This document shows positions 24,642-64,000 of a stretch of 64,000 nucleotides of DNA, piece after piece. The DNA is from Convolutriloba macropyga (taxonomy: Eukaryota), in contig NW_027451295.1 in the NCBI RefSeq assembly GCF_964194025.1, positions 1 to 64,000 on the forward strand, given 5' to 3'. Under the pieces are notes generated by a model. That model did no database searches. It was not told where the DNA came from and was given only the letters and a program-made list of their open reading frames with translations. Positions within the stretch are counted from its first letter, which is position 1. Each line of letters starts with the position of its first letter. A program made the position numbers and the translations under genes.

Positions 24642-26678
24642 GTGCTTATACGTCGTCGACCAGTTGTTCGATCTTCGAACCAGGCCGCAAAAAAAACAGA
24701 GTTTGTTCAGATGGCGTAGCCATAATTACATACACATAATACAATATATATATATGTACTATCAACCACAAAAGTCTTGACACGATTTTGTACGAAACAG
24801 GCATATATTTTCAGTACAGAGCAAGTTGTGGGCCAAATTGTGCAAATGGCGGACCATTGCAAAGCTTAGACCCCAAATGTTAAGAGAATCAGGGTTTAAA
24901 GCCCTAGTAACCCTATTTAGGGCCGGTATTGATAGTATGTTTCTCGATAATTACCGTACGCTCACTCACGGATGGCACCTATATGACACATATATCACCA
25001 TGGGTTTACCGTAGGCACCGCCAGGGCACCCGAGGAGCTGAAGGAGGCTGAGGATATGGTGTGGCAACCCTCCAATGAGGTTGGAGGAGGCTTGGGATTG
25101 AAGGACATGCCTATTGCGCGCGAGAACTGTGTGGACGGGGGCGTTGGCAAGCCAGGCCCCGTCGACCTGGGTTTTGGGGACTGTCACGGCCCTTATCTCC
25201 CACCGCTAAAAAAGATATAAATCGCCAAAGGGGGGGGCACAATGATGGGCGGGCCCCATAATTGTGGGGGTCTGATCATTTTAAAAATACTTCTGGCTCG
25301 CTCTGACAAGCCCTGCTATTTTTTTGGGTTTTTTCTGGGGGCATTTTTAGCCCTCTGATTCGCTTGACCGTGTAGTGTGTGCAGCTACATGCGCGAATAG
25401 ACCTCCCAATTTTGGAGGAGGTTGGGCCCTATGTGTAGTCCACATCCCCCGGGCCTCAAGCCAAAACACTCTCCCTAGAGCGAGGGAGAAATCTTGGCAT
25501 ATTCACTTATTTTCGCCCTGTATCTGGAAAAACGGCAAGTTCCCCAAATGTATGACCCATGTCCATGCTCTATGCCGCGTTTTCCCGTGCTAAAGCATGG
25601 CATTCTAGATTCCTACAGTCGTAGGCAGTATGCACATGCAAGTTTCGACTTGATTTGGCTTGATGGGTGTGTGCCATACCCATTACAGCAAGAAAAATGC
25701 CTTAAAAAACGTAGCAAATTGTCTATCCCTCTCAAGAATATGCATAAGATGCCACCATAATGGGCGACATTGTCCGAATGGACGACTTCATGACAAATCG
25801 CATGCTACATCCTTCCCCCTCTCAGATTTTGGGGGCCATTGATGCACGTTGTCAACTGCACATGCAATATACAACTACCCCAAAATCCAAGGTAGTACTC
25901 TGGATTTAGAAAATATCGCATAATAACACACCCCCTCATTGGTGGGGCCCTATGTGTTGCATGCTCGGATCTCCCTAGCGTATAACTGCAATGCACCAAG
26001 CGGTGACCATGTAAGAATTGTAATCAAGTGCCCATCTCGTCATGTTGTAGGCTCGAGAATTGTTCTGGGTGAACATGGACATTATAAGGATGAAGTTTTG
26101 ATCCGTGAAAGTGCTCATACAGATAGTATGAAAACGGGACGATTCATGCGGCGTTGTGGTCGATTTTGTGGGCAATTTTTCTGGAGAACGACCTGAACGG
26201 GGCAGCCTGGCAGGCGGTCATTTCAAGTCGCGGAAGTCGGCGAATTTCAGGATATACCTAGGATATCGTACGGATTGCGTATATTATGTCGTAGTTCTTT
26301 TGAAATCCGTAACGGTGCCGGACGATGTCTGGTTTCGGATTCGGCGTTCGGAGTTGAAAGTCGGCATGTGCCGATGGCGGTGGGGGGTGAGAAAGGTGAA
26401 TGCAGCGTTTGAAGGGGTGAAACCCAATGCGAGAGAAAAGGGGGCGTAGAAAGTGGGGCGGTGACGGCGGTCGCGCAGTGAACGGTTACGTATGGGCGGC
26501 GGCGGACGCGGTATAGCATGTGCAGTAGGTGGGTAAGGAAAGTTTGCACATACTTTACAAAAGTTAGTGCAATAGGGGGCAAAGCATCTCCAGAACGTGT
26601 GTACGTGTGTAGGCTACAGTAGAAGGCAGCCAAACCCGCACGGGTGTGACATGGGTATATACTATATCCAGTGATATA

Positions 26679-28038
26679 CACTACTCCAATAAAGTTCATG
26701 CAGTATGGATTTTGCAGGGTTAATGGCCACTAAGGGGCATGATGTTCAAAACATCCCCCCAAAGGCTCCTTATGTATGTCTTGCATGAGGCTATGGGGTA
26801 TAGGGGCTGTGCATTGGCTATTTGGCTGCAGTAGTGACTGTAAACCAGGGGGTCCTTGAATGTGTTGCATGGAGCTAGACCTCGTTTTTGCCCAAAACAA
26901 GGCCATTTTCGTGGCCATAGAGCACTTGGGAGGGATGGAGCATGGGAGGGATAACGGGATGGCAGTAATTGCTTGCTTTTGCGCTAGTTGTCCACCAAGG
27001 GACATGCCTAGAAACCATGTGGCCTAGCACCTATGGCAATTACATGTTGGTGTCAGAGGTTTCAGAACTGATGGGGATGAGGGCAGGCCAATGTGGTGCC
27101 TATGGTGGGACCCTATTTCGCGACCCATACCCTAATGAACCTGATTAGGGTGACAATAGGGCCCCACAGTCATCCGTATGAGGCCCTATGAGTATCACAG
27201 GGTGATTCCAAACCCTTAGGGTTAGGGAGAGATTTAGCCAAAACTGAGCAAAACATGCCAAATTGAGGTTCCCAGCAATTGACATGGGCCATAGAGGGTC
27301 AAGAGCTCAAAGATAGCCAAACCTTCGAATAGAGAAGTTGTGAAGCTATGAATTTTACCCCACATGAAGGGGTAGCTCGCCCACCATGGCCTTGGCATGA
27401 CTCTGCTATGGGGGCCTAGAGACAGTACAATTGAAAGTGCCAAAAACAGAAAATTGGCTGTACAGGCCCAGGGAGGCCTCAGATGGCGATTTTGACCGAT
27501 TTTTTGAGGCATGTGCGTAAACTAAGTTGAAAACTTATGTTTACTTGGGCTTCCCCGCACCCTATGCCACTTTCGGGGCCCCCGTCCGAGCTCTCGTGGC
27601 GAAGATAGCTCTCGGCCGCCCCCCTAAATCCCCTCAAATGCGCCCATCAAACTGGCTGCCCACAACATCCCACGTCCCTCTACCCCATGTCTTCCACACT
27701 CATTTTTGTGTTCTCTTGGCCATGGAACCTTCACATCTTGAGGTGTGTCGCCGATTTATGGAGTTACTACCATGCCAGAGTCGCCCAAGCCCTGGCACAG
27801 CCATGTACTACCTAGGTACTGTGAAAGCCAAGTACTGTAACCACCTCAGGTACCTAATACATCACATCATTTAACAACTCAAATCAAGGATTATGAACCT
27901 GAAATCATGTGAGCTGTAAGCCCTAGGGATAATGTCCACGTGACCTGGATAGGGTCTCAACCCTATCAATGTAAACCCTACAATACCACAATGACCAAAA
28001 TGCCCAAAAACACATGCATGAACTTTTTTGGATTAGTG
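26679..28038. mobile_element. Module A copy 1: 1,360-bp non-coding element with 24-bp TIRs
   Basis: Left TIR CACTACTCCAATAAAGTTCATGCA (26679-26702); right TIR TGCATGAACTTTTTTGGATTAGTG (28015-28038); 22/24 match. Left flank TA, right flank TG. Confidence 0.9.
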
Positions 28039-28224
28039 TGGGTGCGAGGGTTGGCCTAGGTTTTCAGACCCTTTCTAGGTTTTTACTCCAAGGGGACGCC
28101 TCATGTAGTCGGCGCCGCCATTCCACGCTGATGTGCACTCAAAATATCATTGTTATCCTTCCACCAGTGCCACTTTGTTTGCACGCACAGTTCTCCCGTA
28201 AGAATTTCAGTCTCTACGTACACA

Positions 28225-29277
28225 ATGGGGCGTGCTGCTGAGGATCTAGCATGGCGCTGGAAGCTTGTTCTTGAGTATGAGCGAGTGGGAAACTACTCTA
28301 AAGTCGCACAACGCCTACTATGCGATGCGAGAGTCGTGAAAAAGTGGGTGCTTCGCTATAAGGAGACTGGTGATGTGCAAGACAAGGACAGGTCTGGCAG
28401 ACCCAGTGCAGGGTTGTCAAGGCCTGAGGTGCAGGAACTGCTGAAAGCAGGCATAGAGGATGGGCTGAAGTGTCCACAACTATCCAACAAGCTGAAGAAG
28501 GATATGGGAATCTCTGTGAGCAAGGAAACTGTGAGGTTGCATCTACATGCCAACTTGGGGCGGCCGCTTCGTCCACGAAAAAAGCCCCAGCTGACAGACA
28601 GCCACAAGGCCAAGCGCTTGGCTTTCTGTTTGCAGTGGGTGAACAGGGATTGGTCAAATGTGGCTGTGTCAGACTCTAAGATCTTTTGGCTCAGTCGAAA
28701 GGGCATTGGCAACAAGGTATGGGTGTTGTATGGGGCTGAACCACCTGTGGAGGCTGCGTACAGAGACTGCACCAAAGTTCATGCTTATGCAGCTGTCACC
28801 AGGTGGGGCAAAACTCCACTGTTCTTCACTGCAGGCACCACAGGAATTAAATTCCCATCTAAGGGAGTAGGTGCTCAGTTATACCTTCAACTATTGGAGC
28901 AGCAGTTGGTTCCAGCCATAAGGGAGCTCATGAAGCAATGCAACGGCGTTCAAAGGGGGCGCCCCTGGATATTTCAGCAAGATGGGGCCCCAGCCCATAG
29001 GGCCAAGGTCACCAAGGCATGGCTAGCACAACAACCTGGCTTCACAGTGATGGAATGGCCCCCTAACAGCCCAGACTTGAGCTGGATTGAAAACCTATGG
29101 AGCGTGGTAGCTAAGCAACTTCACAAAAGGACAGATTTGACACCTCAAAATTTCGCTCAAGCAGTGATTGAAGAGTGGGATAGGATCCCTAGCAACACCT
29201 ACATGGCATTGTACAATTCCATTCAGCGAAGGCTGAGGTCTTGTATTGAGAACAATGGAGGGCATACAAAATACTAG
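28225..29277 (+). CDS. IS630-Tc1-mariner transposase, 350 aa, DD35E (module B copy 1)
   Basis: N-terminal HTH region, RSGRP linker, second HTH (VSKETVRLHL), KKPQLT..HKAKRLAFC; D150 (VAVSDSKIF), D253 (FQQDGAPAH), E289 (WPPNSPDLSWIENLW); C-terminal GGHTKY. ATG at 28225 (the ORF track starts at an upstream TTG). Confidence 0.95.
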   Translation: MGRAAEDLAWRWKLVLEYERVGNYSKVAQRLLCDARVVKKWVLRYKETGDVQDKDRSGRPSAGLSRPEVQELLKAGIEDGLKCPQLSNKLKKDMGISVSKETVRLHLHANLGRPLRPRKKPQLTDSHKAKRLAFCLQWVNRDWSNVAVSDSKIFWLSRKGIGNKVWVLYGAEPPVEAAYRDCTKVHAYAAVTRWGKTPLFFTAGTTGIKFPSKGVGAQLYLQLLEQQLVPAIRELMKQCNGVQRGRPWIFQQDGAPAHRAKVTKAWLAQQPGFTVMEWPPNSPDLSWIENLWSVVAKQLHKRTDLTPQNFAQAVIEEWDRIPSNTYMALYNSIQRRLRSCIENNGGHTKY

Positions 29278-29305
29278 GTTGGAAGCATAGCTACCATGAT
29301 TTTGA

Positions 29306-29310
29306 TGTAA
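29306..29310 (+). terminator. TGTAA chlorophyte-type polyadenylation signal of the transposase gene (present in every B copy)
   Basis: 28 nt after the stop codon and 33 nt before the end of B. TGTAA is the established near-upstream element in Chlamydomonas-type green algae; the host assignment is an inference. Confidence 0.5.
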
Positions 29311-29343
29311 ATCTATCAACCTCAGTCAAAAACATGAATCACA

Positions 29344-30703
29344 CACTACTCCAATAAAGTTCATGCAGTATGGATTTTGCAGGGTTAATGGCCACTAAGG
29401 GGCATGATGTTCAAAACATCCCCCCAAAGGCTCCTTATGTATGTCTTGCATGAGGCTATGGGGTATAGGGGCTGTGCATTGGCTATTTGGCTGCAGTAGT
29501 GACTGTAAACCAGGGGGTCCTTGAATGTGTTGCATGGAGCTAGACCTCGTTTTTGCCCAAAACAAGGCCATTTTCGTGGCCATAGAGCACTTGGGAGGGA
29601 TGGAGCATGGGAGGGATAACGGGATGGCAGTAATTGCTTGCTTTTGCGCTAGTTGTCCACCAAGGGACATGCCTAGAAACCATGTGGCCTAGCACCTATG
29701 GCAATTACATGTTGGTGTCAGAGGTTTCAGAACTGATGGGGATGAGGGCAGGCCAATGTGGTGCCTATGGTGGGACCCTATTTCGCGACCCATACCCTAA
29801 TGAACCTGATTAGGGTGACAATAGGGCCCCACAGTCATCCGTATGAGGCCCTATGAGTATCACAGGGTGATTCCAAACCCTTAGGGTTAGGGAGAGATTT
29901 AGCCAAAACTGAGCAAAACATGCCAAATTGAGGTTCCCAGCAATTGACATGGGCCATAGAGGGTCAAGAGCTCAAAGATAGCCAAACCTTCGAATAGAGA
30001 AGTTGTGAAGCTATGAATTTTACCCCACATGAAGGGGTAGCTCGCCCACCATGGCCTTGGCATGACTCTGCTATGGGGGCCTAGAGACAGTACAATTGAA
30101 AGTGCCAAAAACAGAAAATTGGCTGTACAGGCCCAGGGAGGCCTCAGATGGCGATTTTGACCGATTTTTTGAGGCATGTGCGTAAACTAAGTTGAAAACT
30201 TATGTTTACTTGGGCTTCCCCGCACCCTATGCCACTTTCGGGGCCCCCGTCCGAGCTCTCGTGGCGAAGATAGCTCTCGGCCGCCCCCCTAAATCCCCTC
30301 AAATGCGCCCATCAAACTGGCTGCCCACAACATCCCACGTCCCTCTACCCCATGTCTTCCACACTCATTTTTGTGTTCTCTTGGCCATGGAACCTTCACA
30401 TCTTGAGGTGTGTCGCCGATTTATGGAGTTACTACCATGCCAGAGTCGCCCAAGCCCTGGCACAGCCATGTACTACCTAGGTACTGTGAAAGCCAAGTAC
30501 TGTAACCACCTCAGGTACCTAATACATCACATCATTTAACAACTCAAATCAAGGATTATGAACCTGAAATCATGTGAGCTGTAAGCCCTAGGGATAATGT
30601 CCACGTGACCTGGATAGGGTCTCAACCCTATCAATGTAAACCCTACAATACCACAATGACCAAAATGCCCAAAAACACATGCATGAACTTTTTTGGATTA
30701 GTG
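29344..30703. mobile_element. Module A copy 2
   Basis: Same sequence as A1; flanked CA|...|TG with no TSD. Confidence 0.9.
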
Positions 30704-30889
30704 TGGGTGCGAGGGTTGGCCTAGGTTTTCAGACCCTTTCTAGGTTTTTACTCCAAGGGGACGCCTCATGTAGTCGGCGCCGCCATTCCACGCTGATGTG
30801 CACTCAAAATATCATTGTTATCCTTCCACCAGTGCCACTTTGTTTGCACGCACAGTTCTCCCGTAAGAATTTCAGTCTCTACGTACACA

Positions 30890-31942
30890 ATGGGGCGTGC
30901 TGCTGAGGATCTAGCATGGCGCTGGAAGCTTGTTCTTGAGTATGAGCGAGTGGGAAACTACTCTAAAGTCGCACAACGCCTACTATGCGATGCGAGAGTC
31001 GTGAAAAAGTGGGTGCTTCGCTATAAGGAGACTGGTGATGTGCAAGACAAGGACAGGTCTGGCAGACCCAGTGCAGGGTTGTCAAGGCCTGAGGTGCAGG
31101 AACTGCTGAAAGCAGGCATAGAGGATGGGCTGAAGTGTCCACAACTATCCAACAAGCTGAAGAAGGATATGGGAATCTCTGTGAGCAAGGAAACTGTGAG
31201 GTTGCATCTACATGCCAACTTGGGGCGGCCGCTTCGTCCACGAAAAAAGCCCCAGCTGACAGACAGCCACAAGGCCAAGCGCTTGGCTTTCTGTTTGCAG
31301 TGGGTGAACAGGGATTGGTCAAATGTGGCTGTGTCAGACTCTAAGATCTTTTGGCTCAGTCGAAAGGGCATTGGCAACAAGGTATGGGTGTTGTATGGGG
31401 CTGAACCACCTGTGGAGGCTGCGTACAGAGACTGCACCAAAGTTCATGCTTATGCAGCTGTCACCAGGTGGGGCAAAACTCCACTGTTCTTCACTGCAGG
31501 CACCACAGGAATTAAATTCCCATCTAAGGGAGTAGGTGCTCAGTTATACCTTCAACTATTGGAGCAGCAGTTGGTTCCAGCCATAAGGGAGCTCATGAAG
31601 CAATGCAACGGCGTTCAAAGGGGGCGCCCCTGGATATTTCAGCAAGATGGGGCCCCAGCCCATAGGGCCAAGGTCACCAAGGCATGGCTAGCACAACAAC
31701 CTGGCTTCACAGTGATGGAATGGCCCCCTAACAGCCCAGACTTGAGCTGGATTGAAAACCTATGGAGCGTGGTAGCTAAGCAACTTCACAAAAGGACAGA
31801 TTTGACACCTCAAAATTTCGCTCAAGCAGTGATTGAAGAGTGGGATAGGATCCCTAGCAACACCTACATGGCATTGTACAATTCCATTCAGCGAAGGCTG
31901 AGGTCTTGTATTGAGAACAATGGAGGGCATACAAAATACTAG
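30890..31942 (+). CDS. Tc1-like DD35E transposase, copy 2
   Basis: Translation identical to copy 1. Confidence 0.93.
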   Translation: MGRAAEDLAWRWKLVLEYERVGNYSKVAQRLLCDARVVKKWVLRYKETGDVQDKDRSGRPSAGLSRPEVQELLKAGIEDGLKCPQLSNKLKKDMGISVSKETVRLHLHANLGRPLRPRKKPQLTDSHKAKRLAFCLQWVNRDWSNVAVSDSKIFWLSRKGIGNKVWVLYGAEPPVEAAYRDCTKVHAYAAVTRWGKTPLFFTAGTTGIKFPSKGVGAQLYLQLLEQQLVPAIRELMKQCNGVQRGRPWIFQQDGAPAHRAKVTKAWLAQQPGFTVMEWPPNSPDLSWIENLWSVVAKQLHKRTDLTPQNFAQAVIEEWDRIPSNTYMALYNSIQRRLRSCIENNGGHTKY

Positions 31943-32197
31943 GTTGGAAGCATAGCTACCATGATTTTGATGTAAATCTATCAACCTCAGTCAAAAACAT
32001 GAATCACACTGTGGGTGCGAGGGTTGGCCTAGGTTTTCAGACCCTTTCTAGGTTTTTACTCCAAGGGGACGCCTCATGTAGTCGGCGCCGCCATTCCACG
32101 CTGATGTGCACTCAAAATATCATTGTTATCCTTCCACCAGTGCCACTTTGTTTGCACGCACAGTTCTCCCGTAAGAATTTCAGTCTCTACGTACACA

Positions 32198-33250
32198 ATG
32201 GGGCGTGCTGCTGAGGATCTAGCATGGCGCTGGAAGCTTGTTCTTGAGTATGAGCGAGTGGGAAACTACTCTAAAGTCGCACAACGCCTACTATGCGATG
32301 CGAGAGTCGTGAAAAAGTGGGTGCTTCGCTATAAGGAGACTGGTGATGTGCAAGACAAGGACAGGTCTGGCAGACCCAGTGCAGGGTTGTCAAGGCCTGA
32401 GGTGCAGGAACTGCTGAAAGCAGGCATAGAGGATGGGCTGAAGTGTCCACAACTATCCAACAAGCTGAAGAAGGATATGGGAATCTCTGTGAGCAAGGAA
32501 ACTGTGAGGTTGCATCTACATGCCAACTTGGGGCGGCCGCTTCGTCCACGAAAAAAGCCCCAGCTGACAGACAGCCACAAGGCCAAGCGCTTGGCTTTCT
32601 GTTTGCAGTGGGTGAACAGGGATTGGTCAAATGTGGCTGTGTCAGACTCTAAGATCTTTTGGCTCAGTCGAAAGGGCATTGGCAACAAGGTATGGGTGTT
32701 GTATGGGGCTGAACCACCTGTGGAGGCTGCGTACAGAGACTGCACCAAAGTTCATGCTTATGCAGCTGTCACCAGGTGGGGCAAAACTCCACTGTTCTTC
32801 ACTGCAGGCACCACAGGAATTAAATTCCCATCTAAGGGAGTAGGTGCTCAGTTATACCTTCAACTATTGGAGCAGCAGTTGGTTCCAGCCATAAGGGAGC
32901 TCATGAAGCAATGCAACGGCGTTCAAAGGGGGCGCCCCTGGATATTTCAGCAAGATGGGGCCCCAGCCCATAGGGCCAAGGTCACCAAGGCATGGCTAGC
33001 ACAACAACCTGGCTTCACAGTGATGGAATGGCCCCCTAACAGCCCAGACTTGAGCTGGATTGAAAACCTATGGAGCGTGGTAGCTAAGCAACTTCACAAA
33101 AGGACAGATTTGACACCTCAAAATTTCGCTCAAGCAGTGATTGAAGAGTGGGATAGGATCCCTAGCAACACCTACATGGCATTGTACAATTCCATTCAGC
33201 GAAGGCTGAGGTCTTGTATTGAGAACAATGGAGGGCATACAAAATACTAG
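32198..33250 (+). CDS. Tc1-like DD35E transposase, copy 3
   Basis: Translation identical to copy 1. Confidence 0.93.
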   Translation: MGRAAEDLAWRWKLVLEYERVGNYSKVAQRLLCDARVVKKWVLRYKETGDVQDKDRSGRPSAGLSRPEVQELLKAGIEDGLKCPQLSNKLKKDMGISVSKETVRLHLHANLGRPLRPRKKPQLTDSHKAKRLAFCLQWVNRDWSNVAVSDSKIFWLSRKGIGNKVWVLYGAEPPVEAAYRDCTKVHAYAAVTRWGKTPLFFTAGTTGIKFPSKGVGAQLYLQLLEQQLVPAIRELMKQCNGVQRGRPWIFQQDGAPAHRAKVTKAWLAQQPGFTVMEWPPNSPDLSWIENLWSVVAKQLHKRTDLTPQNFAQAVIEEWDRIPSNTYMALYNSIQRRLRSCIENNGGHTKY

Positions 33251-33505
33251 GTTGGAAGCATAGCTACCATGATTTTGATGTAAATCTATCAACCTCAGTC
33301 AAAAACATGAATCACACAGTGGGTGCGAGGGTTGGCCTAGGTTTTCAGACCCTTTCTAGGTTTTTACTCCAAGGGGACGCCTCATGTAGTCGGCGCCGCC
33401 ATTCCACGCTGATGTGCACTCAAAATATCATTGTTATCCTTCCACCAGTGCCACTTTGTTTGCACGCACAGTTCTCCCGTAAGAATTTCAGTCTCTACGT
33501 ACACA

Positions 33506-34558
33506 ATGGGGCGTGCTGCTGAGGATCTAGCATGGCGCTGGAAGCTTGTTCTTGAGTATGAGCGAGTGGGAAACTACTCTAAAGTCGCACAACGCCTACT
33601 ATGCGATGCGAGAGTCGTGAAAAAGTGGGTGCTTCGCTATAAGGAGACTGGTGATGTGCAAGACAAGGACAGGTCTGGCAGACCCAGTGCAGGGTTGTCA
33701 AGGCCTGAGGTGCAGGAACTGCTGAAAGCAGGCATAGAGGATGGGCTGAAGTGTCCACAACTATCCAACAAGCTGAAGAAGGATATGGGAATCTCTGTGA
33801 GCAAGGAAACTGTGAGGTTGCATCTACATGCCAACTTGGGGCGGCCGCTTCGTCCACGAAAAAAGCCCCAGCTGACAGACAGCCACAAGGCCAAGCGCTT
33901 GGCTTTCTGTTTGCAGTGGGTGAACAGGGATTGGTCAAATGTGGCTGTGTCAGACTCTAAGATCTTTTGGCTCAGTCGAAAGGGCATTGGCAACAAGGTA
34001 TGGGTGTTGTATGGGGCTGAACCACCTGTGGAGGCTGCGTACAGAGACTGCACCAAAGTTCATGCTTATGCAGCTGTCACCAGGTGGGGCAAAACTCCAC
34101 TGTTCTTCACTGCAGGCACCACAGGAATTAAATTCCCATCTAAGGGAGTAGGTGCTCAGTTATACCTTCAACTATTGGAGCAGCAGTTGGTTCCAGCCAT
34201 AAGGGAGCTCATGAAGCAATGCAACGGCGTTCAAAGGGGGCGCCCCTGGATATTTCAGCAAGATGGGGCCCCAGCCCATAGGGCCAAGGTCACCAAGGCA
34301 TGGCTAGCACAACAACCTGGCTTCACAGTGATGGAATGGCCCCCTAACAGCCCAGACTTGAGCTGGATTGAAAACCTATGGAGCGTGGTAGCTAAGCAAC
34401 TTCACAAAAGGACAGATTTGACACCTCAAAATTTCGCTCAAGCAGTGATTGAAGAGTGGGATAGGATCCCTAGCAACACCTACATGGCATTGTACAATTC
34501 CATTCAGCGAAGGCTGAGGTCTTGTATTGAGAACAATGGAGGGCATACAAAATACTAG
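33506..34558 (+). CDS. Tc1-like DD35E transposase, copy 4
   Basis: Translation identical to copy 1. Confidence 0.93.
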   Translation: MGRAAEDLAWRWKLVLEYERVGNYSKVAQRLLCDARVVKKWVLRYKETGDVQDKDRSGRPSAGLSRPEVQELLKAGIEDGLKCPQLSNKLKKDMGISVSKETVRLHLHANLGRPLRPRKKPQLTDSHKAKRLAFCLQWVNRDWSNVAVSDSKIFWLSRKGIGNKVWVLYGAEPPVEAAYRDCTKVHAYAAVTRWGKTPLFFTAGTTGIKFPSKGVGAQLYLQLLEQQLVPAIRELMKQCNGVQRGRPWIFQQDGAPAHRAKVTKAWLAQQPGFTVMEWPPNSPDLSWIENLWSVVAKQLHKRTDLTPQNFAQAVIEEWDRIPSNTYMALYNSIQRRLRSCIENNGGHTKY

Positions 34559-51729: not shown

Positions 51730-51915
51730 TGGGTGCGAGGGTTGGCCTAGGTTTTCAGACCCTTTCTAGGTTTTTACTCCAAGGGGACGCCTCATGTAGT
51801 CGGCGCCGCCATTCCACGCTGATGTGCACTCAAAATATCATTGTTATCCTTCCACCAGTGCCACTTTGTTTGCACGCACAGTTCTCCCGTAAGAATTTCA
51901 GTCTCTACGTACACA

Positions 51916-54276: not shown

Positions 54277-54531
54277 GTTGGAAGCATAGCTACCATGATT
54301 TTGATGTAAATCTATCAACCTCAGTCAAAAACATGAATCACACAGTGGGTGCGAGGGTTGGCCTAGGTTTTCAGACCCTTTCTAGGTTTTTACTCCAAGG
54401 GGACGCCTCATGTAGTCGGCGCCGCCATTCCACGCTGATGTGCACTCAAAATATCATTGTTATCCTTCCACCAGTGCCACTTTGTTTGCACGCACAGTTC
54501 TCCCGTAAGAATTTCAGTCTCTACGTACACA

Positions 54532-55584
54532 ATGGGGCGTGCTGCTGAGGATCTAGCATGGCGCTGGAAGCTTGTTCTTGAGTATGAGCGAGTGGGAAAC
54601 TACTCTAAAGTCGCACAACGCCTACTATGCGATGCGAGAGTCGTGAAAAAGTGGGTGCTTCGCTATAAGGAGACTGGTGATGTGCAAGACAAGGACAGGT
54701 CTGGCAGACCCAGTGCAGGGTTGTCAAGGCCTGAGGTGCAGGAACTGCTGAAAGCAGGCATAGAGGATGGGCTGAAGTGTCCACAACTATCCAACAAGCT
54801 GAAGAAGGATATGGGAATCTCTGTGAGCAAGGAAACTGTGAGGTTGCATCTACATGCCAACTTGGGGCGGCCGCTTCGTCCACGAAAAAAGCCCCAGCTG
54901 ACAGACAGCCACAAGGCCAAGCGCTTGGCTTTCTGTTTGCAGTGGGTGAACAGGGATTGGTCAAATGTGGCTGTGTCAGACTCTAAGATCTTTTGGCTCA
55001 GTCGAAAGGGCATTGGCAACAAGGTATGGGTGTTGTATGGGGCTGAACCACCTGTGGAGGCTGCGTACAGAGACTGCACCAAAGTTCATGCTTATGCAGC
55101 TGTCACCAGGTGGGGCAAAACTCCACTGTTCTTCACTGCAGGCACCACAGGAATTAAATTCCCATCTAAGGGAGTAGGTGCTCAGTTATACCTTCAACTA
55201 TTGGAGCAGCAGTTGGTTCCAGCCATAAGGGAGCTCATGAAGCAATGCAACGGCGTTCAAAGGGGGCGCCCCTGGATATTTCAGCAAGATGGGGCCCCAG
55301 CCCATAGGGCCAAGGTCACCAAGGCATGGCTAGCACAACAACCTGGCTTCACAGTGATGGAATGGCCCCCTAACAGCCCAGACTTGAGCTGGATTGAAAA
55401 CCTATGGAGCGTGGTAGCTAAGCAACTTCACAAAAGGACAGATTTGACACCTCAAAATTTCGCTCAAGCAGTGATTGAAGAGTGGGATAGGATCCCTAGC
55501 AACACCTACATGGCATTGTACAATTCCATTCAGCGAAGGCTGAGGTCTTGTATTGAGAACAATGGAGGGCATACAAAATACTAG
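54532..55584 (+). CDS. Tc1-like DD35E transposase, copy 18
   Basis: Translation identical to copy 1. Confidence 0.93.
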   Translation: MGRAAEDLAWRWKLVLEYERVGNYSKVAQRLLCDARVVKKWVLRYKETGDVQDKDRSGRPSAGLSRPEVQELLKAGIEDGLKCPQLSNKLKKDMGISVSKETVRLHLHANLGRPLRPRKKPQLTDSHKAKRLAFCLQWVNRDWSNVAVSDSKIFWLSRKGIGNKVWVLYGAEPPVEAAYRDCTKVHAYAAVTRWGKTPLFFTAGTTGIKFPSKGVGAQLYLQLLEQQLVPAIRELMKQCNGVQRGRPWIFQQDGAPAHRAKVTKAWLAQQPGFTVMEWPPNSPDLSWIENLWSVVAKQLHKRTDLTPQNFAQAVIEEWDRIPSNTYMALYNSIQRRLRSCIENNGGHTKY

Positions 55585-55839
55585 GTTGGAAGCATAGCTA
55601 CCATGATTTTGATGTAAATCTATCAACCTCAGTCAAAAACATGAATCACACTGTGGGTGCGAGGGTTGGCCTAGGTTTTCAGACCCTTTCTAGGTTTTTA
55701 CTCCAAGGGGACGCCTCATGTAGTCGGCGCCGCCATTCCACGCTGATGTGCACTCAAAATATCATTGTTATCCTTCCACCAGTGCCACTTTGTTTGCACG
55801 CACAGTTCTCCCGTAAGAATTTCAGTCTCTACGTACACA

Positions 55840-56892
55840 ATGGGGCGTGCTGCTGAGGATCTAGCATGGCGCTGGAAGCTTGTTCTTGAGTATGAGCGAG
55901 TGGGAAACTACTCTAAAGTCGCACAACGCCTACTATGCGATGCGAGAGTCGTGAAAAAGTGGGTGCTTCGCTATAAGGAGACTGGTGATGTGCAAGACAA
56001 GGACAGGTCTGGCAGACCCAGTGCAGGGTTGTCAAGGCCTGAGGTGCAGGAACTGCTGAAAGCAGGCATAGAGGATGGGCTGAAGTGTCCACAACTATCC
56101 AACAAGCTGAAGAAGGATATGGGAATCTCTGTGAGCAAGGAAACTGTGAGGTTGCATCTACATGCCAACTTGGGGCGGCCGCTTCGTCCACGAAAAAAGC
56201 CCCAGCTGACAGACAGCCACAAGGCCAAGCGCTTGGCTTTCTGTTTGCAGTGGGTGAACAGGGATTGGTCAAATGTGGCTGTGTCAGACTCTAAGATCTT
56301 TTGGCTCAGTCGAAAGGGCATTGGCAACAAGGTATGGGTGTTGTATGGGGCTGAACCACCTGTGGAGGCTGCGTACAGAGACTGCACCAAAGTTCATGCT
56401 TATGCAGCTGTCACCAGGTGGGGCAAAACTCCACTGTTCTTCACTGCAGGCACCACAGGAATTAAATTCCCATCTAAGGGAGTAGGTGCTCAGTTATACC
56501 TTCAACTATTGGAGCAGCAGTTGGTTCCAGCCATAAGGGAGCTCATGAAGCAATGCAACGGCGTTCAAAGGGGGCGCCCCTGGATATTTCAGCAAGATGG
56601 GGCCCCAGCCCATAGGGCCAAGGTCACCAAGGCATGGCTAGCACAACAACCTGGCTTCACAGTGATGGAATGGCCCCCTAACAGCCCAGACTTGAGCTGG
56701 ATTGAAAACCTATGGAGCGTGGTAGCTAAGCAACTTCACAAAAGGACAGATTTGACACCTCAAAATTTCGCTCAAGCAGTGATTGAAGAGTGGGATAGGA
56801 TCCCTAGCAACACCTACATGGCATTGTACAATTCCATTCAGCGAAGGCTGAGGTCTTGTATTGAGAACAATGGAGGGCATACAAAATACTAG
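55840..56892 (+). CDS. Tc1-like DD35E transposase, copy 19
   Basis: Translation identical to copy 1. Confidence 0.93.
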   Translation: MGRAAEDLAWRWKLVLEYERVGNYSKVAQRLLCDARVVKKWVLRYKETGDVQDKDRSGRPSAGLSRPEVQELLKAGIEDGLKCPQLSNKLKKDMGISVSKETVRLHLHANLGRPLRPRKKPQLTDSHKAKRLAFCLQWVNRDWSNVAVSDSKIFWLSRKGIGNKVWVLYGAEPPVEAAYRDCTKVHAYAAVTRWGKTPLFFTAGTTGIKFPSKGVGAQLYLQLLEQQLVPAIRELMKQCNGVQRGRPWIFQQDGAPAHRAKVTKAWLAQQPGFTVMEWPPNSPDLSWIENLWSVVAKQLHKRTDLTPQNFAQAVIEEWDRIPSNTYMALYNSIQRRLRSCIENNGGHTKY

Positions 56893-57147
56893 GTTGGAAG
56901 CATAGCTACCATGATTTTGATGTAAATCTATCAACCTCAGTCAAAAACATGAATCACACAGTGGGTGCGAGGGTTGGCCTAGGTTTTCAGACCCTTTCTA
57001 GGTTTTTACTCCAAGGGGACGCCTCATGTAGTCGGCGCCGCCATTCCACGCTGATGTGCACTCAAAATATCATTGTTATCCTTCCACCAGTGCCACTTTG
57101 TTTGCACGCACAGTTCTCCCGTAAGAATTTCAGTCTCTACGTACACA

Positions 57148-58200
57148 ATGGGGCGTGCTGCTGAGGATCTAGCATGGCGCTGGAAGCTTGTTCTTGAGTA
57201 TGAGCGAGTGGGAAACTACTCTAAAGTCGCACAACGCCTACTATGCGATGCGAGAGTCGTGAAAAAGTGGGTGCTTCGCTATAAGGAGACTGGTGATGTG
57301 CAAGACAAGGACAGGTCTGGCAGACCCAGTGCAGGGTTGTCAAGGCCTGAGGTGCAGGAACTGCTGAAAGCAGGCATAGAGGATGGGCTGAAGTGTCCAC
57401 AACTATCCAACAAGCTGAAGAAGGATATGGGAATCTCTGTGAGCAAGGAAACTGTGAGGTTGCATCTACATGCCAACTTGGGGCGGCCGCTTCGTCCACG
57501 AAAAAAGCCCCAGCTGACAGACAGCCACAAGGCCAAGCGCTTGGCTTTCTGTTTGCAGTGGGTGAACAGGGATTGGTCAAATGTGGCTGTGTCAGACTCT
57601 AAGATCTTTTGGCTCAGTCGAAAGGGCATTGGCAACAAGGTATGGGTGTTGTATGGGGCTGAACCACCTGTGGAGGCTGCGTACAGAGACTGCACCAAAG
57701 TTCATGCTTATGCAGCTGTCACCAGGTGGGGCAAAACTCCACTGTTCTTCACTGCAGGCACCACAGGAATTAAATTCCCATCTAAGGGAGTAGGTGCTCA
57801 GTTATACCTTCAACTATTGGAGCAGCAGTTGGTTCCAGCCATAAGGGAGCTCATGAAGCAATGCAACGGCGTTCAAAGGGGGCGCCCCTGGATATTTCAG
57901 CAAGATGGGGCCCCAGCCCATAGGGCCAAGGTCACCAAGGCATGGCTAGCACAACAACCTGGCTTCACAGTGATGGAATGGCCCCCTAACAGCCCAGACT
58001 TGAGCTGGATTGAAAACCTATGGAGCGTGGTAGCTAAGCAACTTCACAAAAGGACAGATTTGACACCTCAAAATTTCGCTCAAGCAGTGATTGAAGAGTG
58101 GGATAGGATCCCTAGCAACACCTACATGGCATTGTACAATTCCATTCAGCGAAGGCTGAGGTCTTGTATTGAGAACAATGGAGGGCATACAAAATACTAG
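57148..58200 (+). CDS. Tc1-like DD35E transposase, copy 20
   Basis: Translation identical to copy 1. Confidence 0.93.
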   Translation: MGRAAEDLAWRWKLVLEYERVGNYSKVAQRLLCDARVVKKWVLRYKETGDVQDKDRSGRPSAGLSRPEVQELLKAGIEDGLKCPQLSNKLKKDMGISVSKETVRLHLHANLGRPLRPRKKPQLTDSHKAKRLAFCLQWVNRDWSNVAVSDSKIFWLSRKGIGNKVWVLYGAEPPVEAAYRDCTKVHAYAAVTRWGKTPLFFTAGTTGIKFPSKGVGAQLYLQLLEQQLVPAIRELMKQCNGVQRGRPWIFQQDGAPAHRAKVTKAWLAQQPGFTVMEWPPNSPDLSWIENLWSVVAKQLHKRTDLTPQNFAQAVIEEWDRIPSNTYMALYNSIQRRLRSCIENNGGHTKY

Positions 58201-58455
58201 GTTGGAAGCATAGCTACCATGATTTTGATGTAAATCTATCAACCTCAGTCAAAAACATGAATCACACTGTGGGTGCGAGGGTTGGCCTAGGTTTTCAGAC
58301 CCTTTCTAGGTTTTTACTCCAAGGGGACGCCTCATGTAGTCGGCGCCGCCATTCCACGCTGATGTGCACTCAAAATATCATTGTTATCCTTCCACCAGTG
58401 CCACTTTGTTTGCACGCACAGTTCTCCCGTAAGAATTTCAGTCTCTACGTACACA

Positions 58456-59508
58456 ATGGGGCGTGCTGCTGAGGATCTAGCATGGCGCTGGAAGCTTGTT
58501 CTTGAGTATGAGCGAGTGGGAAACTACTCTAAAGTCGCACAACGCCTACTATGCGATGCGAGAGTCGTGAAAAAGTGGGTGCTTCGCTATAAGGAGACTG
58601 GTGATGTGCAAGACAAGGACAGGTCTGGCAGACCCAGTGCAGGGTTGTCAAGGCCTGAGGTGCAGGAACTGCTGAAAGCAGGCATAGAGGATGGGCTGAA
58701 GTGTCCACAACTATCCAACAAGCTGAAGAAGGATATGGGAATCTCTGTGAGCAAGGAAACTGTGAGGTTGCATCTACATGCCAACTTGGGGCGGCCGCTT
58801 CGTCCACGAAAAAAGCCCCAGCTGACAGACAGCCACAAGGCCAAGCGCTTGGCTTTCTGTTTGCAGTGGGTGAACAGGGATTGGTCAAATGTGGCTGTGT
58901 CAGACTCTAAGATCTTTTGGCTCAGTCGAAAGGGCATTGGCAACAAGGTATGGGTGTTGTATGGGGCTGAACCACCTGTGGAGGCTGCGTACAGAGACTG
59001 CACCAAAGTTCATGCTTATGCAGCTGTCACCAGGTGGGGCAAAACTCCACTGTTCTTCACTGCAGGCACCACAGGAATTAAATTCCCATCTAAGGGAGTA
59101 GGTGCTCAGTTATACCTTCAACTATTGGAGCAGCAGTTGGTTCCAGCCATAAGGGAGCTCATGAAGCAATGCAACGGCGTTCAAAGGGGGCGCCCCTGGA
59201 TATTTCAGCAAGATGGGGCCCCAGCCCATAGGGCCAAGGTCACCAAGGCATGGCTAGCACAACAACCTGGCTTCACAGTGATGGAATGGCCCCCTAACAG
59301 CCCAGACTTGAGCTGGATTGAAAACCTATGGAGCGTGGTAGCTAAGCAACTTCACAAAAGGACAGATTTGACACCTCAAAATTTCGCTCAAGCAGTGATT
59401 GAAGAGTGGGATAGGATCCCTAGCAACACCTACATGGCATTGTACAATTCCATTCAGCGAAGGCTGAGGTCTTGTATTGAGAACAATGGAGGGCATACAA
59501 AATACTAG
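58456..59508 (+). CDS. Tc1-like DD35E transposase, copy 21
   Basis: Translation identical to copy 1. Confidence 0.93.
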   Translation: MGRAAEDLAWRWKLVLEYERVGNYSKVAQRLLCDARVVKKWVLRYKETGDVQDKDRSGRPSAGLSRPEVQELLKAGIEDGLKCPQLSNKLKKDMGISVSKETVRLHLHANLGRPLRPRKKPQLTDSHKAKRLAFCLQWVNRDWSNVAVSDSKIFWLSRKGIGNKVWVLYGAEPPVEAAYRDCTKVHAYAAVTRWGKTPLFFTAGTTGIKFPSKGVGAQLYLQLLEQQLVPAIRELMKQCNGVQRGRPWIFQQDGAPAHRAKVTKAWLAQQPGFTVMEWPPNSPDLSWIENLWSVVAKQLHKRTDLTPQNFAQAVIEEWDRIPSNTYMALYNSIQRRLRSCIENNGGHTKY

Positions 59509-59763
59509 GTTGGAAGCATAGCTACCATGATTTTGATGTAAATCTATCAACCTCAGTCAAAAACATGAATCACACAGTGGGTGCGAGGGTTGGCCTAGGT
59601 TTTCAGACCCTTTCTAGGTTTTTACTCCAAGGGGACGCCTCATGTAGTCGGCGCCGCCATTCCACGCTGATGTGCACTCAAAATATCATTGTTATCCTTC
59701 CACCAGTGCCACTTTGTTTGCACGCACAGTTCTCCCGTAAGAATTTCAGTCTCTACGTACACA

Positions 59764-60816
59764 ATGGGGCGTGCTGCTGAGGATCTAGCATGGCGCTGGA
59801 AGCTTGTTCTTGAGTATGAGCGAGTGGGAAACTACTCTAAAGTCGCACAACGCCTACTATGCGATGCGAGAGTCGTGAAAAAGTGGGTGCTTCGCTATAA
59901 GGAGACTGGTGATGTGCAAGACAAGGACAGGTCTGGCAGACCCAGTGCAGGGTTGTCAAGGCCTGAGGTGCAGGAACTGCTGAAAGCAGGCATAGAGGAT
60001 GGGCTGAAGTGTCCACAACTATCCAACAAGCTGAAGAAGGATATGGGAATCTCTGTGAGCAAGGAAACTGTGAGGTTGCATCTACATGCCAACTTGGGGC
60101 GGCCGCTTCGTCCACGAAAAAAGCCCCAGCTGACAGACAGCCACAAGGCCAAGCGCTTGGCTTTCTGTTTGCAGTGGGTGAACAGGGATTGGTCAAATGT
60201 GGCTGTGTCAGACTCTAAGATCTTTTGGCTCAGTCGAAAGGGCATTGGCAACAAGGTATGGGTGTTGTATGGGGCTGAACCACCTGTGGAGGCTGCGTAC
60301 AGAGACTGCACCAAAGTTCATGCTTATGCAGCTGTCACCAGGTGGGGCAAAACTCCACTGTTCTTCACTGCAGGCACCACAGGAATTAAATTCCCATCTA
60401 AGGGAGTAGGTGCTCAGTTATACCTTCAACTATTGGAGCAGCAGTTGGTTCCAGCCATAAGGGAGCTCATGAAGCAATGCAACGGCGTTCAAAGGGGGCG
60501 CCCCTGGATATTTCAGCAAGATGGGGCCCCAGCCCATAGGGCCAAGGTCACCAAGGCATGGCTAGCACAACAACCTGGCTTCACAGTGATGGAATGGCCC
60601 CCTAACAGCCCAGACTTGAGCTGGATTGAAAACCTATGGAGCGTGGTAGCTAAGCAACTTCACAAAAGGACAGATTTGACACCTCAAAATTTCGCTCAAG
60701 CAGTGATTGAAGAGTGGGATAGGATCCCTAGCAACACCTACATGGCATTGTACAATTCCATTCAGCGAAGGCTGAGGTCTTGTATTGAGAACAATGGAGG
60801 GCATACAAAATACTAG
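59764..60816 (+). CDS. Tc1-like DD35E transposase, copy 22
   Basis: Translation identical to copy 1. Confidence 0.93.
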   Translation: MGRAAEDLAWRWKLVLEYERVGNYSKVAQRLLCDARVVKKWVLRYKETGDVQDKDRSGRPSAGLSRPEVQELLKAGIEDGLKCPQLSNKLKKDMGISVSKETVRLHLHANLGRPLRPRKKPQLTDSHKAKRLAFCLQWVNRDWSNVAVSDSKIFWLSRKGIGNKVWVLYGAEPPVEAAYRDCTKVHAYAAVTRWGKTPLFFTAGTTGIKFPSKGVGAQLYLQLLEQQLVPAIRELMKQCNGVQRGRPWIFQQDGAPAHRAKVTKAWLAQQPGFTVMEWPPNSPDLSWIENLWSVVAKQLHKRTDLTPQNFAQAVIEEWDRIPSNTYMALYNSIQRRLRSCIENNGGHTKY

Positions 60817-60882
60817 GTTGGAAGCATAGCTACCATGATTTTGATGTAAATCTATCAACCTCAGTCAAAAACATGAATCACA

Positions 60883-62242
60883 CACTACTCCAATAAAGTT
60901 CATGCAGTATGGATTTTGCAGGGTTAATGGCCACTAAGGGGCATGATGTTCAAAACATCCCCCCAAAGGCTCCTTATGTATGTCTTGCATGAGGCTATGG
61001 GGTATAGGGGCTGTGCATTGGCTATTTGGCTGCAGTAGTGACTGTAAACCAGGGGGTCCTTGAATGTGTTGCATGGAGCTAGACCTCGTTTTTGCCCAAA
61101 ACAAGGCCATTTTCGTGGCCATAGAGCACTTGGGAGGGATGGAGCATGGGAGGGATAACGGGATGGCAGTAATTGCTTGCTTTTGCGCTAGTTGTCCACC
61201 AAGGGACATGCCTAGAAACCATGTGGCCTAGCACCTATGGCAATTACATGTTGGTGTCAGAGGTTTCAGAACTGATGGGGATGAGGGCAGGCCAATGTGG
61301 TGCCTATGGTGGGACCCTATTTCGCGACCCATACCCTAATGAACCTGATTAGGGTGACAATAGGGCCCCACAGTCATCCGTATGAGGCCCTATGAGTATC
61401 ACAGGGTGATTCCAAACCCTTAGGGTTAGGGAGAGATTTAGCCAAAACTGAGCAAAACATGCCAAATTGAGGTTCCCAGCAATTGACATGGGCCATAGAG
61501 GGTCAAGAGCTCAAAGATAGCCAAACCTTCGAATAGAGAAGTTGTGAAGCTATGAATTTTACCCCACATGAAGGGGTAGCTCGCCCACCATGGCCTTGGC
61601 ATGACTCTGCTATGGGGGCCTAGAGACAGTACAATTGAAAGTGCCAAAAACAGAAAATTGGCTGTACAGGCCCAGGGAGGCCTCAGATGGCGATTTTGAC
61701 CGATTTTTTGAGGCATGTGCGTAAACTAAGTTGAAAACTTATGTTTACTTGGGCTTCCCCGCACCCTATGCCACTTTCGGGGCCCCCGTCCGAGCTCTCG
61801 TGGCGAAGATAGCTCTCGGCCGCCCCCCTAAATCCCCTCAAATGCGCCCATCAAACTGGCTGCCCACAACATCCCACGTCCCTCTACCCCATGTCTTCCA
61901 CACTCATTTTTGTGTTCTCTTGGCCATGGAACCTTCACATCTTGAGGTGTGTCGCCGATTTATGGAGTTACTACCATGCCAGAGTCGCCCAAGCCCTGGC
62001 ACAGCCATGTACTACCTAGGTACTGTGAAAGCCAAGTACTGTAACCACCTCAGGTACCTAATACATCACATCATTTAACAACTCAAATCAAGGATTATGA
62101 ACCTGAAATCATGTGAGCTGTAAGCCCTAGGGATAATGTCCACGTGACCTGGATAGGGTCTCAACCCTATCAATGTAAACCCTACAATACCACAATGACC
62201 AAAATGCCCAAAAACACATGCATGAACTTTTTTGGATTAGTG
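60883..62242. mobile_element. Module A copy 5
   Basis: Same as A1; flanked CA|...|TG. Confidence 0.9.
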
Positions 62243-62428
62243 TGGGTGCGAGGGTTGGCCTAGGTTTTCAGACCCTTTCTAGGTTTTTACTCCAAGGGGA
62301 CGCCTCATGTAGTCGGCGCCGCCATTCCACGCTGATGTGCACTCAAAATATCATTGTTATCCTTCCACCAGTGCCACTTTGTTTGCACGCACAGTTCTCC
62401 CGTAAGAATTTCAGTCTCTACGTACACA

Positions 62429-63481
62429 ATGGGGCGTGCTGCTGAGGATCTAGCATGGCGCTGGAAGCTTGTTCTTGAGTATGAGCGAGTGGGAAACTAC
62501 TCTAAAGTCGCACAACGCCTACTATGCGATGCGAGAGTCGTGAAAAAGTGGGTGCTTCGCTATAAGGAGACTGGTGATGTGCAAGACAAGGACAGGTCTG
62601 GCAGACCCAGTGCAGGGTTGTCAAGGCCTGAGGTGCAGGAACTGCTGAAAGCAGGCATAGAGGATGGGCTGAAGTGTCCACAACTATCCAACAAGCTGAA
62701 GAAGGATATGGGAATCTCTGTGAGCAAGGAAACTGTGAGGTTGCATCTACATGCCAACTTGGGGCGGCCGCTTCGTCCACGAAAAAAGCCCCAGCTGACA
62801 GACAGCCACAAGGCCAAGCGCTTGGCTTTCTGTTTGCAGTGGGTGAACAGGGATTGGTCAAATGTGGCTGTGTCAGACTCTAAGATCTTTTGGCTCAGTC
62901 GAAAGGGCATTGGCAACAAGGTATGGGTGTTGTATGGGGCTGAACCACCTGTGGAGGCTGCGTACAGAGACTGCACCAAAGTTCATGCTTATGCAGCTGT
63001 CACCAGGTGGGGCAAAACTCCACTGTTCTTCACTGCAGGCACCACAGGAATTAAATTCCCATCTAAGGGAGTAGGTGCTCAGTTATACCTTCAACTATTG
63101 GAGCAGCAGTTGGTTCCAGCCATAAGGGAGCTCATGAAGCAATGCAACGGCGTTCAAAGGGGGCGCCCCTGGATATTTCAGCAAGATGGGGCCCCAGCCC
63201 ATAGGGCCAAGGTCACCAAGGCATGGCTAGCACAACAACCTGGCTTCACAGTGATGGAATGGCCCCCTAACAGCCCAGACTTGAGCTGGATTGAAAACCT
63301 ATGGAGCGTGGTAGCTAAGCAACTTCACAAAAGGACAGATTTGACACCTCAAAATTTCGCTCAAGCAGTGATTGAAGAGTGGGATAGGATCCCTAGCAAC
63401 ACCTACATGGCATTGTACAATTCCATTCAGCGAAGGCTGAGGTCTTGTATTGAGAACAATGGAGGGCATACAAAATACTAG
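62429..63481 (+). CDS. Tc1-like DD35E transposase, copy 23
   Basis: Translation identical to copy 1. Confidence 0.93.
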   Translation: MGRAAEDLAWRWKLVLEYERVGNYSKVAQRLLCDARVVKKWVLRYKETGDVQDKDRSGRPSAGLSRPEVQELLKAGIEDGLKCPQLSNKLKKDMGISVSKETVRLHLHANLGRPLRPRKKPQLTDSHKAKRLAFCLQWVNRDWSNVAVSDSKIFWLSRKGIGNKVWVLYGAEPPVEAAYRDCTKVHAYAAVTRWGKTPLFFTAGTTGIKFPSKGVGAQLYLQLLEQQLVPAIRELMKQCNGVQRGRPWIFQQDGAPAHRAKVTKAWLAQQPGFTVMEWPPNSPDLSWIENLWSVVAKQLHKRTDLTPQNFAQAVIEEWDRIPSNTYMALYNSIQRRLRSCIENNGGHTKY

Positions 63482-63547
63482 GTTGGAAGCATAGCTACCA
63501 TGATTTTGATGTAAATCTATCAACCTCAGTCAAAAACATGAATCACA

Positions 63548-64000
63548 CACTACTCCAATAAAGTTCATGCAGTATGGATTTTGCAGGGTTAATGGCCACT
63601 AAGGGGCATGATGTTCAAAACATCCCCCCAAAGGCTCCTTATGTATGTCTTGCATGAGGCTATGGGGTATAGGGGCTGTGCATTGGCTATTTGGCTGCAG
63701 TAGTGACTGTAAACCAGGGGGTCCTTGAATGTGTTGCATGGAGCTAGACCTCGTTTTTGCCCAAAACAAGGCCATTTTCGTGGCCATAGAGCACTTGGGA
63801 GGGATGGAGCATGGGAGGGATAACGGGATGGCAGTAATTGCTTGCTTTTGCGCTAGTTGTCCACCAAGGGACATGCCTAGAAACCATGTGGCCTAGCACC
63901 TATGGCAATTACATGTTGGTGTCAGAGGTTTCAGAACTGATGGGGATGAGGGCAGGCCAATGTGGTGCCTATGGTGGGACCCTATTTCGCGACCCATACC
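63548..64000. mobile_element. Module A copy 6 (truncated by the window end)
   Basis: Starts with the left TIR after CA. Confidence 0.9.

Follow-up and report, generated by a model that had tools for sequence, protein, structure and literature searches.

How does a transposon move if its transposase gene lies outside its terminal inverted repeats? This question is raised by a tandem array in the animal Convolutriloba macropyga, on a 64-kb stretch of contig NW_027451295.1 (assembly GCF_964194025.1, positions 1 to 64,000), which we refer to as the window. Self-comparison of the window revealed that, from position 26679 to its end, it consists of two modules only: module A, which is non-coding and bounded by terminal inverted repeats (TIRs), and module B, which carries an intact Tc1-like transposase gene and has no inverted repeats. 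They are arranged as flank-TA-A-B-A-B10-A-B4-A-B7-A-B-A, with the final A cut by the window end; the original prediction, made from the letters of the window, had read the order in the same way. Here, we present evidence that the composite A-(B-A)n is the mobile unit. We consider it probable that the array belongs to a natural "sandwich" (composite) Tc1-like family, which moves by its outer ends and in which arrays, excision footprints and loss of inner ends are derived features.

Composite insertions and the modules that form them

The main evidence comes from other loci. By looking up the transposase and a small open reading frame (ORF) of A (55 amino acids) in the HiFi metagenome assembly ERZ25071359, which may share its sample with the window, we identified six further loci with both flanks. 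L006, L017, L021, L023 and L024 are A-B-A, with a total length of 4,025 bp, and L007 is A-B-A-B-A. The flanks of these loci are unrelated to one another and to the window. Nevertheless, all six are bounded on the outside by TA-CACTAC...TTAGTG-TA (hyphens in sequences mark the boundaries), and at all six the inner joints are invariant, reading GTG-TGGGTGC and AATCACA-CAC with CA/TG and no TA. Because TA is found at both outer ends in six unrelated flanks, these observations support the idea that the composite moves as one unit, and that it is the whole unit that carries the insertion signature of Tc1/mariner elements. The TA target duplication is thus present at both outer ends of six composites and at the left end of the window array, where the leftmost A adjoins TA (GATATA-CACTAC; one copy of the target-site duplication, at 26677-26678). 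The inner A ends in the window adjoin CA and TG. As in a composite transposon, a pair of end-bounded modules flanks a cargo and, at the six loci, the duplication lies on the outside only.

The core claim of the original prediction, in which a composite A-(B)n-A moves and the enzyme is its cargo, is borne out by these six TA-bounded insertions and by the retention of the layout across families described below. The search for A-B-A at other loci that it had proposed yields TA outside and none inside, its proposed search for related transposases with the same layout yields diverged families that share it, and its observation that only the outermost A end adjoins TA holds for the window.

Two side observations concern the flanks. 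The left flank of L006 (L006:2320-2903) shares dispersed repeats of 87-93% identity with the window at 19770-19877 and 23118-23385; the L006 and window insertions themselves sit in different sequence. The flanks of the L007 composite read ...CTACTGTA (L007:3440-3452) and TACTGTAG... (L007:10149-10160), and the right flank of L024 starts with TACTGT. The same letters, as TACTGTA, form the canonical footprint of Sleeping Beauty, which may reflect chance or target preference.

In the window, 23 B copies form blocks of 1, 10, 4, 7 and 1, and all 29 modules (23 B and 6 A) are in direct orientation. No differences exist among the five complete A copies or among the 23 B copies (100% identity). The first A (1,360 bp, CACTAC...TTAGTG) occupies 26679-28038 on the plus strand and is followed on the same strand by copies at 29344-30703, 43781-45140, 50370-51729, 60883-62242 and 63548-64000; the last of these is incomplete, and the right end of the array lies beyond the window. 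The first B (1,305 bp, TGGGTGC...AATCACA) occupies 28039-29343 and the last complete B, between the fifth and sixth A, 62243-63547, both on the plus strand. The period of A+B is 2,665 and that of B-B 1,308. The size of A and its 24-bp TIRs had been predicted correctly, but the best phase for its start (CACTAC...TTAGTG) lies one base further to the right; similarly, the predicted 1,305 bp is correct as the length of B but not as its repeat period, the three joint bases between adjacent B copies having been overlooked. Upstream of the array, the window holds a 320-bp unit present twice (17444-18075), an assembly gap of 152 N (18633-18784), a 31-bp tandem repeat (20526-20697) and 43 copies of CGACCCC (24341-24642).

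All copies in the window are 100% identical and the window ends within the array, which raises the question of whether the array is an artefact, with a few repeated units mis-assembled or expanded too far. We examined Logan contigs assembled from public runs of two samples, both of the same organism, which may share a source sample with the window. These contigs contain the A-B, B-A and B-CTG-B joints, while the CAG form of the B-B joint was inferred from a reverse-strand contig, and they also contain several distinct joints between an A end and a TA flank. In the same runs, B exceeds A in word depth by a factor of ∼1.6-2, and flank contigs lie far below either module. In ERZ25071359, an identical B protein is encoded on several contigs, and contig ctg21194 exactly repeats the linker order of the block of ten B copies (T-A-T-A-A-T-T-A-A, by central base). 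Beyond this block, ctg21194 has a block with CTG and then at least 14 CAG, which is absent from the window. Although this agreeing contig may derive from the same reads as the window, an artefact is hardly credible given that every joint type recurs in runs from two samples, that B exceeds A and both exceed the flanks in depth, that a non-periodic CTG/CAG order is reproduced by a second assembly, and that the small composites are wholly spanned within HiFi contigs of 12-31 kb. The module joints are well supported and we take them as proven; the exact copy numbers of the array we grade lower, as likely.

The transposase ORF of the first B (28225-29277, plus strand) encodes 350 amino acids followed by a stop codon and is intact in 23/23 copies. 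The protein matches the Pfam domains HTH_Tnp_Tc3_2 (4.5e-13) and DDE_3 (7.5e-12), and among solved structures its closest relative is the catalytic domain of Sleeping Beauty, SB100X (5cr4, E = 1e-22). Counted on the SB100X alignment, the second catalytic D and the E are 35 residues apart, in agreement with the DD35E label assigned originally, and D, D and E are kept in 8/8 family representatives. With an N-terminal helix-turn-helix (HTH) domain and a DDE domain, the enzyme belongs to the Tc1-like members of Tc1/mariner. The element is not built like one, as no single TIR pair encloses the gene: the A tips beside B point at B, and the only enclosing pair in the composite is that of the outermost A ends. 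An end-motif search of the window and inspection of the sequence revealed no inverted repeats belonging to B; its ends share only CAGTG, of which three of the five bases come from the linker, and we rejected the idea that B possesses such repeats. Between the window and L007, the B ORF has four differences, all synonymous. The sole broken B seen in the window family is one copy on ctg21194 (L001:2200-3503 = L009:2750-4053), in which a 1-nucleotide deletion cuts the ORF to 214 amino acids. In most families (L012-L015, L026 and L027), the transposase ATG is preceded, at a distance of 14-65 nucleotides, by a pyrimidine-rich stretch that ends in CAG; the window version (28191-28224) has TTTCAG 14 nucleotides upstream of the ATG. 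B might be expressed by trans-splicing, even from read-through array transcripts.

Module A carries the ends. The left TIR of the first A, CACTACTCCAATAAAGTTCATGCA, is at 26679-26702 on the plus strand, and the right TIR, CACTAATCCAAAAAAGTTCATGCA on the minus strand, is at 28015-28038 with its tip toward B. The 24-nucleotide end motif CACTA[C/A]TCCAA[T/A]AAAGTTCATGCA has 11 matches in the window, all at A ends, with 0 expected by chance. The interior of A gave no Rfam match and, for three A-associated ORFs, no Pfam match, and no ORF is kept across families. We tried two explanations for this interior and rejected both. A as a decayed transposase gene is not supported: when six-frame translations of nine A modules were compared with the family profile, the best E was 4, and a weak tblastn match (E = 2.1) is insignificant. 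Equally, A is not a recognisable coding or RNA gene, given that it has no cross-family ORF and no Pfam or Rfam match and that its one conserved patch is conserved equally on both strands. This patch (A ∼875-1106; 27553-27784 in the window, plus strand) was found by comparison with the relatives L011 and L012 (62-64% protein identity), which share it with the window at the same relative position; elsewhere A cannot be aligned between families. It is possibly a regulatory region upstream of the transposase gene.

The ends of A have counterparts outside the family. One 1.4-kb contig of the public runs, matched to the window at 28007-28043 and 29339-29367, has A-like ends (2-4 mismatches) around an unrelated interior, and other contigs share only approximately the last 30 nucleotides of A. 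Other element families in this genome therefore use related ends.

The layout in diverged families

The composite layout is not confined to the window family. In other metagenomes, L011 and L012 were recovered as cyclic A+B assemblies of 2,650 and 2,694 bp in which inverted-repeat arms flank the gene with their tips pointing at it. In ERZ25071359, L013 (46% protein identity) is TA-A-B-A-B-A-TA and L015 (45%) is TA-A-B-A-TA, with modules that differ in sequence but match in size (∼1,345-1,356 bp); L026 (37%) is an (A-B)n array, and L027 (44%) is a B-B tandem followed by A. Relatives at 29-34% identity in Joint Genome Institute (JGI) metagenomes (L031, L035, L036, L040 and L088) also have the tips-toward-gene layout and cyclic A+B contigs. 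The same JGI metagenomes yield conventional elements with similar ends as well (e.g., L038, L051 and L057). Thus, judged from the assembled sequences, the layout in which the ends face the gene recurs in at least six diverged families (37-64%) and, in addition, in the relatives at 29-34%.

In families of at least 42% identity, seven measured A modules have lengths of 1,342-1,362 bp, and in more distant families A spans 774-1,153 bp. In the window, L007, L011-L015 and L027, the near-constant length of A is close to that of B despite sequences that cannot be aligned. This near-constancy suggests selection on length or end spacing. In L040, a relative at 29% identity, two tandem A+B units (L040:1-4809) differ by 23%, which marks the array as old and not as recently amplified. 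Near the L015 composite, a called gene (L015:1117-1635) has a weak match to the Pfam family Replitron_C.

L014 (43%) looks conventional. It reads TA-l(431)-d(698)-B(1,324)-d(698)-r(231)-TA, where l, d and r together measure 1,360 bp. It is most simply read as A-B-A in which the terminal 231 bp of the first A and the initial 431 bp of the second would be missing; both of these putative deletions begin at the B boundaries and both remove inner ends. Bacterial composites become unit transposons in a parallel manner.

B-B joints, growth of the array and rival origins

Wherever two B copies adjoin in the window, the joint holds three extra bases, CTG in nine cases and CAG in nine. Their alternation is not strict. 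In the block of ten B copies (30704-43780), the linkers are CTG CAG CTG CAG CAG CTG CTG CAG CAG, the first at 32009-32011 and the second at 33317-33319; in the block of four (45141-50369), they are CTG CAG CTG, and in the block of seven (51730-60882), CTG CAG CTG CAG CTG CAG, all three blocks being on the plus strand. These C[A/T]G linkers correspond to the terminal bases of A (CAC...GTG), as CA+G or C+TG. In L027, A has different ends (CAG...CCG) and the B-B joint is CG, i.e., the first and the last base of its A. Sleeping Beauty leaves TAC(A/T)GTA at the donor site, where the choice of A or T comes from the central mismatch formed when the overhangs meet (PMC6943129), and it also leaves shorter footprints including TACGTA (10.1101/659086). 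Because terminal bases of A are found in the B-B joints of two families, and in forms known for Sleeping Beauty footprints, we read the joints as excision footprints: they would fit as donor sites from which internal A copies were excised from an (A-B)n array. Tc1/mariner footprints hold two to four terminal bases, and the joints, C[A/T]G here and CG in L027, consist of terminal bases of A throughout; an excision is suggested by these joints. Two other origins of the linkers were rejected. An insertion of A into an existing B-B joint would have found no TA there and, by its polarity, would delete three bases and not duplicate them; a hairpin or P-nucleotide footprint of the hAT type does not apply, since the linker is not an inverted complement of its flanks.

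The linkers allow another reading, in which B is a Tc1 element in its own right with ends CAG...CTG, and the array is an end-joined concatemer of excised linear A and B ligated via 3-nucleotide overhangs, a route that has been proposed for transposon circles and for the Bari1 cluster. C[T/A]G is exactly the junction expected of annealed Sleeping Beauty-type CTG overhangs with a central T:T mismatch (PMC6943129), B with its linker starts with CAGTG, a typical Tc1 terminus, and the Bari1 cluster shows that head-to-tail Tc1-like arrays with few bases missing per joint exist (PMC8834629). However, B has no inverted repeat past those five bases, and the L027 joint CG matches the termini of A and not a terminus of B. 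Four like overhangs should also be ligated at random and mix the orientations, whereas 29/29 modules are direct, which fits unequal exchange. Moreover, A-B-A is found at six loci and in many families with its inner joints fixed, and no B lies next to unique DNA among the loose contig ends listed for the public runs. We therefore regard a concatemer of this kind as very improbable. The suggestion in the original prediction that the inner ends could release B likewise finds no support, with no B beside unique DNA among these loose ends.

We favor, instead, a composite family moving by its outer ends. The transposase encoded by B would recognise the ends of A; the outermost left and right ends would be paired, and A-B-A as a whole would be excised and inserted at a TA, duplicating it. 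The window array would be an expanded derivative of one such insertion, produced in three steps for which we suggest the following order. First, unequal exchange between A copies would generate (A-B)n-A. Second, internal A copies would be excised and the breaks rejoined with a 3-nucleotide footprint, CA+G or C+TG, the two forms representing two readings of a central A/T mismatch. Third, the resulting B-B blocks would be enlarged by further unequal exchange. The outer ends may be preferred because only they have a flanking TA. If the TA rule of Sleeping Beauty holds, pairs of two outer ends (two TA) would be used in preference to pairs of an outer and an inner end (one TA), and these in preference to pairs of inner ends (no TA); with outer pairs favored, the composite would stay together.

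Several points weigh against this scenario. Under the simple Sleeping Beauty pairing rule with 3-nucleotide overhangs, ends of the form CAC...GTG predict CAC or GTG and not CAG or CTG; with A ends that do not pair as in Sleeping Beauty, the footprint needs end trimming or a 2-nucleotide stagger. The internal A copies have no flanking TA on either side, and Sleeping Beauty excision is blocked without any flanking TA, at least one being needed (10.1101/659086). In 4/4 blocks, the linker nearest to the preceding A-B is CTG and the one after it CAG, so that few independent events followed by unequal exchange would suffice; as few as two independent excisions could account for all 18 linkers. An A that excises should also give rise to solo A insertions, and there are none among the six contigs that carry the 55-amino-acid ORF of A, although the depth ratio is compatible with some. 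Of the earlier suggestion that each A could leave as an element of its own, the footprint-like B-B joints speak for the excision part only. Among these contigs, A lacks the dispersed solo copies, with TA duplications of their own, that mark a miniature inverted-repeat transposable element (MITE) or non-autonomous partner, and the proposal that the locus serves as a MITE launcher finds no support; a role as a transposase depot is speculation. We also looked up the flanking genes of two low-coverage composites in search of empty alleles and recovered occupied contigs only. Finally, plain cut-and-paste movement of the composite does not predict that its paired A copies are identical. Yet the A copies within every composite are identical to each other, though the lineages differ: L017, L021 and L023 have two shared changes in A, L007 has those two and eleven more (13), and at each locus the changes are present in all A copies. 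This identity calls for either fast homogenisation, through unequal exchange and arrays that act as masters, or a phase in which only one A exists.

A single-A stage is the essence of a different origin, in which the element follows a circle-borne or replicative cycle and the heritable unit is a single A+B, either a 2.67-kb circle or an array unit. A could transpose from an A-B circle with copying of A, in a cointegrate-like manner, or A-B-A could be cut from a rolling-circle or array concatemer. By either route, the paired A copies would be born identical and the inner A-B joints would be inherited unchanged. This accounts for the identity of the two A copies in every composite, for lineage changes that occupy all A copies (2 in L017, L021 and L023; 13, nested, in L007) and for inner joints that are invariant and without TA. 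For many relatives, moreover, the assemblies are cyclic A+B contigs (2.0-3.2 kb) whose ends overlap by k-mers, and a 35-kb contig of B and A flagged as circular by the assembler has a depth of 19x versus 3-7x for the flanked loci. However, assemblers yield cyclic contigs and circular flags from A-B-A or arrays in any case, no circles are directly evidenced, and identity of the A copies could also be maintained in arrays through unequal exchange, as concerted evolution. As known from the biochemistry of Mos1, Hsmar1 and Sleeping Beauty, Tc1/mariner enzymes cleave both DNA strands, beginning with the non-transferred one, which makes a replicative path unexpected. We therefore consider such a cycle unlikely. 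In its broadest form, in which these elements would be a widespread undescribed Tc1-like class with a single A+B as heritable form and cointegrate-like insertions in which A is copied, we consider it quite unlikely; if true, it would mean a replicative or circle-borne path in a superfamily thought to be strictly cut-and-paste.

Relation to known elements and implications

The composite family resembles several known systems and is identical to none of them. It shares with the Tc1/mariner elements (Sleeping Beauty, Tc1 and Bari; DD34E-DD35E) an enzyme with HTH and DDE_3 domains, TA duplication, and inverted ends of the CA...AAAGT type, which are similar in the conventional L051 and L057; its B-B joints resemble their short footprints of terminal bases. 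It differs from them in that the gene lies outside any single end pair, the nearest tips face the gene, and two direct modules of 1.36 kb are needed. In bacterial composites with direct copies of an insertion sequence, e.g., Tn9, or in the IS630-based Tn630 (PMC11544213), an end-bounded module pair likewise flanks a cargo, the outer ends move the whole, and the target duplication is found outside only. The roles, however, are reversed here: the flanking modules are non-coding, A having no match to the transposase profile, Pfam or Rfam, and the transposase gene is the cargo. In addition, the host is an animal and the layout is kept across a clade rather than being a one-off.

The closest parallel in design is engineered. 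In the Sleeping Beauty "sandwich" vector (Zayed et al. 2004, as described in PMC4229213), a pair of complete elements, each with its own ends, surrounds the cargo, and cutting is intended at the outer ends only, as we suggest here. In that vector, the elements are arranged head to head and a mutated terminal CA inactivates the inner ends, whereas the modules described here are direct, have intact inner ends without flanking TA, occur naturally and come with their own enzyme. The Bari1 clusters in Drosophila melanogaster heterochromatin consist of whole TIR-bounded elements, each minus 2 bases (PMC8834629). They are similar in being head-to-tail Tc1-like arrays with few terminal bases altered per joint and very high copy identity; by contrast, TIRs are lacking in the coding unit B, which alternates with a second module, and three bases of the lost module are retained at each joint, so that the window is not a tandem of whole elements. 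Tandems of transposable elements produced by double insertion (PMC5932611) belong to the same group of comparisons. Alternative transposition and macrotransposons of maize Ac/Ds, in which the ends of two nearby elements are used together (PMC4270019), also give rise to composite insertions and duplications from ends of separate elements. As that source presents them, they belong to the hAT superfamily and are sporadic rearrangements, not the standard heritable form of a family. Among open-access papers, we found no description of the layout reported here, in agreement with the original prediction, which knew of no such element.

In textbook cut-and-paste transposons, a single pair of ends encloses the gene of the enzyme; the entire clade described here has it outside, between two end-bearing non-coding modules. 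This clade comprises several diverged families in one animal, with composites that have been recently mobile, and relatives in unrelated metagenomes. What the sandwich vector achieves by engineering has a natural counterpart here, and the arrangement of bacterial composites is reversed. With its four competing ends, A-B-A offers a system for testing which ends are chosen, what the flanking TA contributes and which excision footprints are left. That the paired A copies are always identical hints at a copying step or very fast homogenisation. Altogether, the loci suggest a stepwise path from a transposon to a long tandem array of intact transposase genes, which bears on the unexplained Bari1 clusters and on the origin of satellites from transposons.

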